From positions 186,001-250,000 of the IMG/VR virus record IMGVR_UViG_3300028676_000003: a stretch of 64,000 nucleotides of DNA; one strand, 5' to 3'. Position numbers and translations under genes: made by a program. Numbering within the stretch: the stretch's first letter is position 1; each line of letters starts with the position of its first letter. This document shows positions 48,285-48,446 of the stretch, in pieces. Below the pieces are notes generated by a model that saw only the letters and a list, made by a program, of their open reading frames with translations, was not told where the DNA came from and ran no database searches.

Positions 48285-48386
48285 ATGAACACAATTAACA
48301 TACATATGATATCGATTAGCAATTGGAGACGTAATAGTCACCGTGCTACGGGTATGCCAAATTGTGAAGGTGGTACTGAAGTGTAA
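48285..48386 (+). CDS. Putative attenuator leader peptide MNTINIHMISISNWRRNSHRATGMPNCEGGTEV
   Basis: 33-codon ORF between promoter (48190) and terminator; codons match downstream tRNAs. Confidence 0.75.
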   Translation: MNTINIHMISISNWRRNSHRATGMPNCEGGTEV

Positions 48387-48412
48387 CTTCTAGTAATCCT
48401 TAATAATAACAT

Positions 48413-48446
48413 AAACCCGATAGCTCTAGAGTTCATCGGGTTTTTT
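48413..48446 (+). terminator. Attenuator terminator
   Basis: AAACCCGAT...ATCGGGTTT plus T tract; 5' arm also complementary to GCTACGGGT at 48345-48353. Confidence 0.8.

Follow-up and report, generated by a model that had tools for sequence, protein, structure and literature searches.

Ribosome-mediated (leader-peptide) transcription attenuators are best known from the amino acid operons of Enterobacteria (trp, his, thr, ilvGMEDA, leu, and pheA). In the usual description, a short promoter-proximal ORF carries the regulatory codons, and ribosome position selects among three overlapping pairings: a 1:2 anti-antiterminator, a 2:3 antiterminator, and a 3:4 intrinsic terminator. The ilvGMEDA and thr leaders sense several amino acids at once, and these attenuators are known to respond to tRNA level and modification (hisR, hisT, and miaA mutants). 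The Escherichia coli pheST attenuator (pheM leader) is understood to place a gene of the translation apparatus under the same type of control, but it is cellular, reads a single amino acid, and controls a synthetase rather than tRNA genes. T-box riboswitches also convert tRNA status into antitermination upstream of translation-related genes, but they bind uncharged tRNA directly through a specifier codon and the T-box sequence, without a ribosome. Nascent-peptide arrest leaders such as TnaC, SecM, ErmCL, and SpeFL generally depend on a specific peptide sequence acting in the ribosomal exit tunnel. Phage-encoded tRNAs are proposed or shown to replace host tRNAs that are cleaved or depleted during infection (PMC10264068; PMC11555353). 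These studies describe the tRNAs and their anticodon-loop changes, not a sensing element that regulates their transcription, and we found no description of such an element in the literature searched.

Here, we analyze a leader in front of a phage tRNA array within a 64,000-nucleotide window of the IMG/VR record IMGVR_UViG_3300028676_000003 (positions 186,001 to 250,000). The cargo is tRNA genes rather than biosynthetic enzymes, so the input and the output are the same molecules. The sensor is a panel of one to three scattered codons for each of 6-11 tRNA species rather than tandem runs for one to three amino acids, and the element is phage-encoded with a Bacteroidota-type promoter. Tandem runs are typical of the his, phe, thr, and leu leaders but are not strictly defining, as trpL has only two such codons.

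A leader ORF that samples the anticodon classes of the downstream array

The leader ORF (48285-48386, + strand) runs from ATG to TAA and encodes 33 amino acids, MNTINIHMISISNWRRNSHRATGMPNCEGGTEV. ARAGORN and Rfam identified 15 tRNAs downstream at 48648-53076 (+): Ser-UGA x2, Trp-CCA, Asn-GUU x3, His-GUG x2, Ile-GAU x2, CAU x2, Arg-ACG, Arg-UCU, and Ser-GCU. The array ends at 53076 and not at 53075 as given in the preliminary description, and it is interspersed with small ORFs and an HNH endonuclease gene. The preliminary description listed codons 2-20 of the ORF correctly. Under standard wobble rules, 18 of these 19 codons are read by the array tRNAs, and all nine anticodon classes are sampled. 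The exception is ACA at codon 3, which has no cognate tRNA in the window. An extra tRNA-like sequence at 49425-49517 might have supplied the missing Thr-UGU, but its anticodon arm is unreadable. Only 2 of codons 21-33 match. Codons 24-27 (ATG CCA AAT TGT) match other tRNAs of the window (Met, Pro-UGG, and Cys-GCA), but these codons are not conserved in relatives, and we treat this match as chance.

The codon match is far beyond chance. The matching codons make up 28% of codon usage in the phage's genes, and the binomial P for at least 18 of 19 is 1.5e-9. The P that 19 random codons cover all nine classes is 2e-5. A six-frame scan of the whole window showed that this is the only 19-codon stretch with 16 or more matches. 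Two hundred third-order Markov simulations of the window never reached 18; the maximum was 17, in 2 of 200. We saw no comparable leader plus terminator before the other tRNA clusters of the window, which are Met-Pro-Met at 38978, the CTA tRNA at 42804, and Cys at 43669 and 43961.

Promoter, terminator, and alternative pairings of the leader RNA

The promoter (48167-48197, +) is of Bacteroidota type. A -33 TTG (48168-48170) is followed 19 nt later by the -7 box TACCTTTG (48190-48197), and the transcription start is inferred near 48203. The site belongs to a family of about 14 near-identical, strand-specific TTG-N19/20-TACCTTTGTA sites that lie on the coding strand in front of genes and tRNAs. 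The 5' untranslated region (48203-48284, +) is about 82 nt and ends in an A-rich stretch (aaacaaaaaaaaagaaaca) directly before the ATG. It is unusually long, the family median being 44 nt, and its pairing of 48207-48221 with 48390-48406 is specific to this phage and is not conserved in relatives.

The intrinsic terminator (48413-48450, +) consists of a 5' arm (48413-48425), a loop (48426-48429), a 3' arm (48430-48443), and the T-run TTTTTTATTT, with a folding energy of -13.8 kcal/mol. A generic terminator scan missed it because, taken as the 9-bp stem alone (48413-48421 with 48435-48443), the loop is 13 nt, over that scan's 8-nt limit. A long imperfect hairpin inside the ORF (48290-48366, +) appears in the minimum-energy folds and corresponds to the 1:2 anti-antiterminator. 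It pairs 48290-96 with 48360-66, 48299-303 with 48352-56, 48312-14 with 48349-51, and 48317-21 with 48344-48, and has an apex at 48324-48343. Segment 2 (GCTACGGGT, 48345-48353, +) is the switch strand, which pairs either with segment 1 or with the terminator 5' arm. It is the best duplex partner of the terminator arm at -14.0 kcal/mol, and in a transcript cut before the 3' arm it pairs with 48415-48424 with probability 0.95. This antiterminator helix encloses a spacer hairpin spanning the stop codon region (48367-48401, +).

Folding with a modeled ribosome was used to test whether ribosome position could select between these structures. At equilibrium, the full-length transcript folds into the terminator wherever the ribosome is placed. 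In the nascent transcript, by contrast, the antiterminator forms with the ribosome on codons 1-17 and cannot form with the ribosome on codons 18-31. A switch would therefore rest on cotranscriptional kinetics, and on transcription-translation coupling that is not established for these hosts.

No leader or other cis-regulatory Rfam family, including T-box, matched the 48167-48450 region in a search of 47000-54000 at E up to 1. The hits were the array tRNAs plus weak subthreshold matches elsewhere in the region, and a scan of the whole window added only a tmRNA.

The first gene after the terminator (48464-48649, +) encodes a conserved small protein of 61 amino acids (56-67 in relatives) with no Pfam or PHROG match. 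Its predicted fold is beta-alpha-alpha-beta-beta with pLDDT 80 and no significant PDB match. No promoter motif lies between the terminator and the first four tRNAs. The preliminary description cautioned that a second promoter at 49013-49043 (+; TTG...TACCTTTG) can drive the distal tRNAs independently, and this is correct for this phage. The internal promoter follows the first four tRNAs and can drive His and all later tRNAs, 11 of the 15, without the attenuator. A promoter at this position is found only in a subset of relatives, and in most relatives no promoter motif lies inside the array. According to Pfam and PHROGs, a neighboring gene (53817-54743, +) encodes a P-loop kinase (AAA_33) fused to a tRNA-ligase-type cyclic phosphodiesterase domain, a candidate RNA-end healing enzyme.

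Homologous leaders in uncultured jumbo-phage contigs

About 70 distinct homologous leaders were found in uncultured jumbo-phage contigs by three routes. Two of these did not use the leader sequence but were anchored on the kinase/phosphodiesterase gene, which is syntenic with the array in relatives, or on the small protein. A DNA search of cultured phages with the window region returned only tRNA hits, and the upstream 286-amino acid protein and the CCA-adding enzyme found only the same phage in IMG/VR. Among 185,579 bacterial and archaeal species genomes, 54 pattern hits contained only one true leader, on a short contig that gave no host clue.

The homologous leaders keep ORF, terminator, and tRNA array, and a TTG-N18-21-TAnnTTTG promoter motif precedes nearly all of them. 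The arrays hold the same core set of His, Trp, Asn, Ser-UGA, Ile-GAU, CAU, Arg-ACG, Arg-UCU, and Ser-GCU, although many array tRNAs are noncanonical and are detected only at relaxed thresholds, so array content is uncertain. The start codon, the frame, and the distance from stop codon to terminator are kept, and indels inside the ORF mostly come in threes.

The RNA switch is also conserved. The best partner of the terminator 5' arm lies at codons 19-27 in 26 of 26 leaders examined first and then in 66 of 70, across 41 different arm 7-mers. Own arms bind better than foreign ones (-11.4 against -8.3 kcal/mol). A column-wise covariation test of the antiterminator was only moderate, with 63.7% paired against 62% for a slide of -1. 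This test is blurred by register shifts, bulge positions differing between subfamilies, and was replaced by the per-sequence duplex analysis. All seven terminator stem pairs in the family alignment show compensatory changes. The architecture of the hairpin inside the ORF is found in 26 of 26 relatives folded, and 83% of its cells are paired in the alignment compared to 30-41% when the partners are slid. These data support the trp/his-type geometry proposed in the preliminary description.

Selection acts on membership in the tRNA set and not on the peptide. The sensor codons 2-18 of this phage (NTINIHMISISNWRRNS, 48288-48338, +) are each read by a tRNA class of the array, except ACA. Family-wide, codons 4-18 are 98.5% in the set, whereas codons 21 to the end sit at background (33%). 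In-set conservation ends at about codon 18, where a stalled ribosome would begin to cover segment 2. Of the variant codon types at positions 4-18, 42 are in the set and 5 are not, where about 48% would be expected (P 2e-9). Second codon positions vary freely, with Ile/Asn/Ser and Met/Arg interchanging, and one leader (L202) swaps the positions of the Trp and Ser codons. The sensor nucleotides are also one strand of the 1:2 hairpin, and the invariance of TCG at codon 10 and of AGA-CGY at codons 15-16 therefore cannot be credited to tRNA identity alone. The leader also does not follow every gain or loss. Some arrays with no detectable Asn (that of leader L023) or Ile-GAU/CAU (L043) keep those codons, and arrays with an extra Arg-CCU or Ser-GGA show no new codon.

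Leader codons and array content in divergent phages

The preliminary description proposed that its reading would fail if leader codons and array content were uncorrelated in homologous loci, and this test came out strongly in its favor. In addition to the homologous leaders, four divergent leader types stand in front of arrays with different content and carry the matching different codons. The leader designated L111 samples 10 of its 11 classes within codons 2-18 and 11 of 11 by codon 19 (P 5e-7); a search with its pattern found no further copies in IMG/VR. Tenacibaculum phage Gundel_1 samples 6 of 6 and Maribacter phage Panino 7 of 7. Cellulophaga phage Calle_1, together with phi38:1 and phi40:1, samples the first 8 of 8, although the choice of the first eight tRNAs as the relevant block was made after seeing the data. 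A possible Ala tRNA after the Calle_1 terminator was not supported by Infernal. When the five leader types were each scored on all five arrays, four scored best on their own array, and Gundel_1 scored one higher (10 versus 9) on the closely related Panino array. Outside Bacteroidota hosts, Acinetobacter phage Mithridates has a promoter, an 8-codon ORF, and a hairpin before its first tRNA, but the ORF is too short to evaluate.

Proposed mechanism

These data suggest that the element is a ribosome-mediated transcription attenuator that probably places a phage tRNA operon under the control of the supply of the very tRNAs that the operon encodes. We consider this reading likely, but leader translation, stalling, regulated read-through, the kinetic competition between structures, and the feedback are inferred from sequence, without expression data. 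In this model, transcription starts at the promoter at 48167-48197, and a ribosome translates the 33-codon leader, in which codons 2-18 form a panel with one to three codons for each tRNA class of the array. If every codon is decoded promptly, or if no ribosome loads, the ORF-internal hairpin forms or re-forms, the terminator at 48413-48446 folds, and transcription stops. If the ribosome stalls on any panel codon because its charged tRNA is scarce, it covers segment 1 and leaves segment 2 free to pair with the terminator 5' arm (48415-48424). RNA polymerase then reads on into the small protein gene and the tRNA array, and the new phage tRNAs relieve the stall, closing a negative feedback loop. 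With only one to three scattered codons for each tRNA, the panel is predicted to have low sensitivity to mild shortage. The shortage could be caused by host tRNA-cleaving defense, decay of the host tRNA pool after shut-off, or a mismatch between codon demand and supply. The preliminary description offered host anticodon nucleases as an example of the trigger, and this has only circumstantial support from the RNA-healing kinase/phosphodiesterase gene beside the array.

Alternative explanations

The same attenuator might instead sense amino acid starvation, with the conserved small protein as the meaningful cargo and the tRNAs merely cotranscribed. The small protein gene directly follows the terminator in most relatives, and a stalled ribosome cannot tell a missing tRNA from an uncharged one. 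However, the link between leader, terminator, and tRNAs persists where the small protein is absent, in the relatives L009, L019, and L063, where tRNAs follow the terminator directly, and in Gundel_1, Panino, and Calle_1. The small protein also occurs without any leader in other phages. Leader codons track which tRNAs are downstream, down to isoacceptors (AGA and CGY; TCG and AGY; ATT and ATA), and not a metabolic theme, and making tRNA does not relieve amino acid starvation. We regard this explanation as unlikely.

An RNA-only switch, in which the ORF is a by-product of the structured RNA and a protein, a small molecule, or a tRNA (as in a T-box) chooses between terminator and antiterminator, is about as improbable. 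The leader RNA is strongly structured (z-scores of -3.4 to -4.2), and its nucleotides are constrained by pairing. However, no Rfam family was found for the leader at E up to 1, and the start codon, frame, and stop position are kept in about 70 variants. RNA structure alone cannot explain why the codons in one frame equal the decoding set of the downstream tRNAs in five unrelated sequence versions.

It is slightly less likely that the leader encodes a nascent arrest peptide or a functional micropeptide whose resemblance to the tRNA set is incidental. The stretch SIS(N)WRRNS is highly conserved, and Trp sits at codon 14 in all five leader types. However, substitutions are radical at the amino acid level yet stay within the tRNA set, the Trp and Ser positions are swapped in L202, and the four divergent leaders share almost no sequence yet each matches its own array. 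Finally, a short unregulated transcription unit with a chance codon match, as might be suggested by the many small ORFs of an AT-rich genome and by the internal promoter, is very unlikely given the unique extreme in the six-frame scan, the conserved module with its covarying antiterminator, and the lack of a separate promoter for the first four tRNAs and the small protein gene and, in most relatives, for the whole array.

Implications

A broader and more tentative possibility, which we rate as somewhat less likely than not, is that phages of Flavobacteriia, and possibly other phages, routinely fit each tRNA operon with a bespoke leader codon panel that is rewritten as the array gains or loses tRNAs. 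This would give a self-regulating tRNA-stat that also works as an alarm, in which loss of any single tRNA species, for instance through a host anticodon nuclease, would switch on the replacement tRNAs. The leader would then also be a readable label of what each odd, noncanonical phage tRNA decodes. The "undetermined" tRNA of Gundel_1 has a GCA anticodon loop that matches the leader's TGT codon, and several leaders are currently annotated as hypothetical proteins. The same design occurs in the cultured phage-host pairs Tenacibaculum/Gundel_1, Cellulophaga/Calle_1 and phi38:1, and Maribacter/Panino, and infection RNA-seq exists for phi38:1 (PMC5335546). The element is also a possible tool, as a compact, natural biosensor for the level of many tRNAs at once.

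If the proposed mechanism is true, this would be the first case known to us in which tRNA genes are controlled by ribosome-mediated attenuation that reads their own codons, a direct feedback between tRNA supply and tRNA synthesis. What phage tRNAs are for, and when they are needed, has been an open question for decades. The leader states which tRNAs the phage treats as limiting, and its read-through would report, in vivo, when they become limiting through defense-triggered cleavage, host shut-off, or codon demand.

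A leader ORF whose codons match the downstream tRNA array

The leader ORF at 48285-48386 (+) runs from ATG to TAA, contains 33 codons, and encodes MNTINIHMISISNWRRNSHRATGMPNCEGGTEV. ARAGORN and Rfam agree on 15 tRNA genes at 48648-53076 that fall into nine anticodon classes: Ser-UGA, Trp-CCA, Asn-GUU, His-GUG, Ile-GAU, CAU, Arg-ACG, Arg-UCU, and Ser-GCU. Under ordinary wobble rules, 18 of codons 2-20 are read by these tRNAs, and ACA is the exception. Every class is sampled, and only 2 of codons 21-33 match. The codon set covers 28% of codon usage in the phage's own genes, which gives P = 1.5e-9 for at least 18 of 19 matches and P = 2e-5 for covering all nine classes in 19 codons. 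A six-frame scan of all 64 kb found no other 19-codon stretch with 16 or more matches, and 200 third-order Markov simulations of the window never reached 18. These data confirm the observation and show that it is not chance.

Many array tRNAs are non-canonical, here and in the relatives designated L009, L019, and L123. His, Ile, and Asn anticodons sit on 84-88-nt tRNAs with a long variable arm next to a canonical copy, and one tRNA-like sequence has a giant D-loop and an unreadable anticodon arm (49169-49253, 50674-50757, 51373-51460, and 49425-49517). In relatives, several array members appear only at relaxed ARAGORN thresholds, and the phage contig L111 has tRNAs with 6-nt and 9-nt anticodon loops. 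HNH endonuclease genes are repeatedly inserted inside the tRNA arrays (51020-51388 in the window; L006 about 5980-6555; L012 about 520-917; and 6584-7090 in L262, Tenacibaculum phage Gundel_1), in one case next to a truncated tRNA copy (L006 about 5885-5930). This suggests homing-type turnover of array content.

Promoter and terminator

The promoter is convincing. The motif TACCTTTG occurs 18 times on the + strand and once on the - strand, and about 14 copies share the layout TTG-N19/20-TACCTTTGTA directly upstream of genes, tRNAs, and a tmRNA. This arrangement corresponds to the -33/-7 layout that is known for Bacteroidota promoters. The terminator is a 13+4/9-bp stem at 48413-48443 followed by TTTTTTATTT. 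A generic terminator scan missed it because, taken as the 9-bp stem alone, the loop is 13 nt, over the 8-nt limit of the scan. No promoter motif lies between the terminator and the first four tRNAs, and the next one is the internal promoter at 49013-49043. In this particular phage, the internal promoter limits strict dependence on the attenuator to the small protein encoded downstream of the terminator and the first four tRNAs, but in most relatives the whole array has no other recognizable promoter.

A phage-encoded tmRNA at 37383-37757 (+) was identified by Rfam (RF00023, 66 bits) but missed by ARAGORN, and it follows its own promoter (37283-37312) and a hairpin (37329-37359). The relatives L014, L032, and L035 carry a tmRNA with the tag GNDFVVSENFL(T/N)EAACSFAGELAVA. 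About 340 nt at 38640-38975 (+), between a strong promoter (38599-38628) and tRNA-Met, hold no convincing ORF and are richer in G+C than the surroundings. This may be an unknown structured RNA, and it has no Rfam match at gathering thresholds. A tRNA with anticodon CTA at 42804-42879 (+), which would read the amber stop codon, lies directly after a promoter (42763-42791) and is also found in the relatives L007, L018, and L063. Some homologous leaders end in TAG, so suppression could extend their translation towards the terminator.

Alternative RNA structures in the leader

The full leader transcript folds into a long imperfect hairpin inside the ORF (48290-48366), a spacer hairpin, and the terminator, with z-scores of -3.4 to -4.2. 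Segment 2 (48345-48353) is the 3' strand of the ORF hairpin and is also complementary to the terminator 5' arm (48415-48424), forming 9 pairs with one bulge. At equilibrium the terminator wins wherever a ribosome is placed, which is also true of classical attenuators. In contrast, in a nascent transcript ending before the 3' arm the antiterminator has a probability of 0.95, persists with a ribosome modeled on codons 1-17, and is abolished with the ribosome on codons 18-31. A strong long-range pairing (-14.7 kcal/mol, z = -4.7) was also detected between the start of the 5'UTR and the spacer after the leader stop codon (48207-48221 with 48390-48406). It is present only in this phage, which has an unusually long UTR (82 nt compared to a median of 44).

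Homologous leaders in related phages

The window is identical to two IMG/VR contigs of 274 and 368 kb, so this is a jumbo phage. Three searches gave about 70 distinct leaders from freshwater and marine samples. The queries were the neighboring kinase/phosphodiesterase protein, a degenerate DNA pattern of the leader, and the conserved small protein downstream of the terminator. The small protein search was run in IMG/VR and in metagenomes and did not depend on the leader sequence. All share the same order of promoter, ORF of 24-33 codons, terminator, usually the small protein gene, and then an array with the same core tRNA set. In L023 (IMGVR_UViG_3300032288_002237), two complete leader-terminator-small-protein modules lie in tandem about 1.5 kb apart in front of one array, with leaders at 9225-9376 and 7664-7816 on the minus strand. 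The small protein family also occurs in other phage contigs (L096-L101, L107, L114-L118, and L121) with no leader and no nearby tRNAs, so it is an independent, widespread phage gene of unknown function. Only one true copy of the leader was found among 185,579 species genomes, and it was on a short contig. The element is therefore phage-borne.

The leader structure is conserved through covariation. The best duplex partner of each leader's own terminator arm lies at codons 19-27 in 26 of 26 and then 66 of 70 leaders, and this holds across 41 different arm 7-mers. Own arms bind the site better than foreign arms (-11.4 compared to -8.3 kcal/mol). RNAalifold recovers the terminator with compensatory changes at all 7 pairs. 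The ORF hairpin is kept, with 83% of cells paired compared to 30-41% when the partners are slid. The column-wise test of the antiterminator is weaker (63.7%) because bulge positions differ between subfamilies.

Selection on codon set membership

Across 69 distinct family leaders, codons 4-18 are in the tRNA set in 1019 of 1035 cases (98.5%), whereas codons 21 to the end are at 33%, which is background. Variation is concentrated at second and third codon positions, and amino acids change radically (Ile/Asn/Ser, Met/Arg/Ile) without leaving the set. Of the variant codon types, 42 are in the set and 5 are not, compared to 48% expected from single-base neighbors (P 2e-9), although these variants are not fully independent. 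One leader (L202) even swaps the positions of the Trp and Ser codons. The nucleotides of the in-set codons are also one strand of the ORF hairpin, and the invariance of TCG (codon 10) and of AGA-CGY (codons 15-16) is therefore not by itself evidence for selection on particular isoacceptors. The third base of CGY sits in the apical loop and varies T/C/A, which is the decoding range of an inosine-34 tRNA-Arg. In-set conservation stops at about codon 18, where a stalled ribosome would start to occlude segment 2.

Covariation of leader codons with array content

Four further leader types sit in the same architecture in front of arrays with different content. The leader of L111, a 345-kb contig, encodes MRQVVIETGIRFNWAQCEDIELGCVMYDTEYF and precedes tRNAs for Trp, Arg-UCU, Ala, Val, Gly, Thr, Arg-ACG, Glu, Asp, Gln, and Cys. 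All 11 classes are sampled by codon 19 (P 5e-7). The leader of Tenacibaculum phage Gundel_1 encodes MKTKLYSYSCFSSWFKNRAG and precedes tRNAs for Tyr, Trp, Phe, Ser-UGA, Cys, and Ser-GCU followed by a terminator. All six classes are sampled in codons 6-15. The leader of Maribacter phage Panino encodes MKTKGNTFSWFNYSNCSDCNCGG... and is annotated as a hypothetical protein. It precedes tRNAs for Tyr, Ser-UGA, Ser-GCU, Asn, Trp, Phe, and Cys, and all seven classes are sampled. The leader of Cellulophaga phage Calle_1 (L263; MT732432.1) encodes MKTIMNIATDIRTKGVKLLGRSRVL, and the first eight downstream tRNAs, Lys, Ile, Gly, Met, Asp, Thr, Val, and Arg-UCU, are all sampled, although the choice of the first eight tRNAs as the relevant block was made after seeing the data. 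The Calle_1 leader is 99.4% identical in Cellulophaga phages phi38:1 and phi40:1.

The public annotation misses or leaves undetermined several tRNAs directly after these attenuators. In Gundel_1 (L262 5853-5996 and 6174-6247), these are a Tyr-GUA-like tRNA, a Trp-CCA tRNA, and a tRNA with a GCA (Cys) anticodon loop; two were unannotated and one was annotated as undetermined. In Panino (L264 3696-3901), they are Tyr-GUA and Ser-UGA. The tRNA coordinates annotated in the Calle_1 record are offset by about 52 nt from where ARAGORN and Infernal place the same tRNAs in the sequence.

The five leaders were scored against the five arrays. The own-array scores are 16, 12, 9, 10, and 13 of 17, and scores on other arrays are 8 or less, apart from the related Gundel/Panino pair. 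Four of the five leaders score highest on their own array, and the Gundel_1 leader scores one higher (10 compared to 9) on the Panino array. The preliminary description had named a lack of correlation between leader codons and array content in homologous loci as a result that would count against it, and the hypothesis passes this test. The tracking is not perfect within the main family. Some arrays seem to lack a class whose codon is kept, but array content is uncertain because many array tRNAs are non-canonical and appear only at relaxed thresholds. Outside these phages, Acinetobacter phage Mithridates (L265 5560-5612; MW316731.1) has a sigma-70-like promoter, an 8-codon ORF (MRCLFPFR), and a hairpin with T-run immediately before the first tRNA of a 14-tRNA array. 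Five or six of the seven codons are read by array tRNAs, but the ORF is too short for a test. This hints that the design may exist outside phages of Bacteroidota.

A proposed ribosome-mediated attenuator of phage tRNA genes

The best explanation for these sequence data is a ribosome-mediated attenuator whose regulatory codons are a panel for the tRNAs of the operon it controls. In this model, in which leader translation and regulated read-through are inferred, a stall on any panel codon favors read-through, and the newly made tRNAs then restore termination. The alternatives fit less well. Amino acid starvation sensing on behalf of the small protein is unlikely because the link between leader and tRNAs survives where that protein is absent. 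An RNA-only switch is also doubtful because the frame and start codon are kept, and structure cannot explain a match in one reading frame across five sequence versions. An arrest or functional peptide is difficult to reconcile with amino acids that change freely. A chance ORF is excluded by the statistics and the conservation.

A cluster of translation and proteostasis genes surrounds the tRNAs (34553-37269, 39489-40043, 44647-45765, and 53817-54743). It encodes DnaJ, ClpP, a 184-residue release-factor-like protein with a GGQ motif (RF-1/PCRF domains), a CCA-adding enzyme, and a kinase fused to a tRNA-ligase-type cyclic phosphodiesterase. No RNA ligase was seen among the proteins scanned. The kinase-phosphodiesterase, the CCA-adding enzyme, the release-factor-like protein, the tmRNA, and ClpP suit a phage that expects damage to the translation apparatus. 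The trigger is open; this evidence is circumstantial, and decay of the host tRNA pool after shut-off or plain codon demand would work equally well.

We found no description of such an element in the literature searched, which included papers on phage tRNAs and tRNA-targeting defense, the paper describing Gundel and Calle, and the phi38:1 transcriptome paper. Ribosome-mediated attenuation itself is a classical mechanism. As far as we can tell, what is new is its cargo of tRNA genes, its logic in which the input equals the output, its design as a multi-tRNA codon panel that appears to be rewritten as the array changes, and its carriage by phages.
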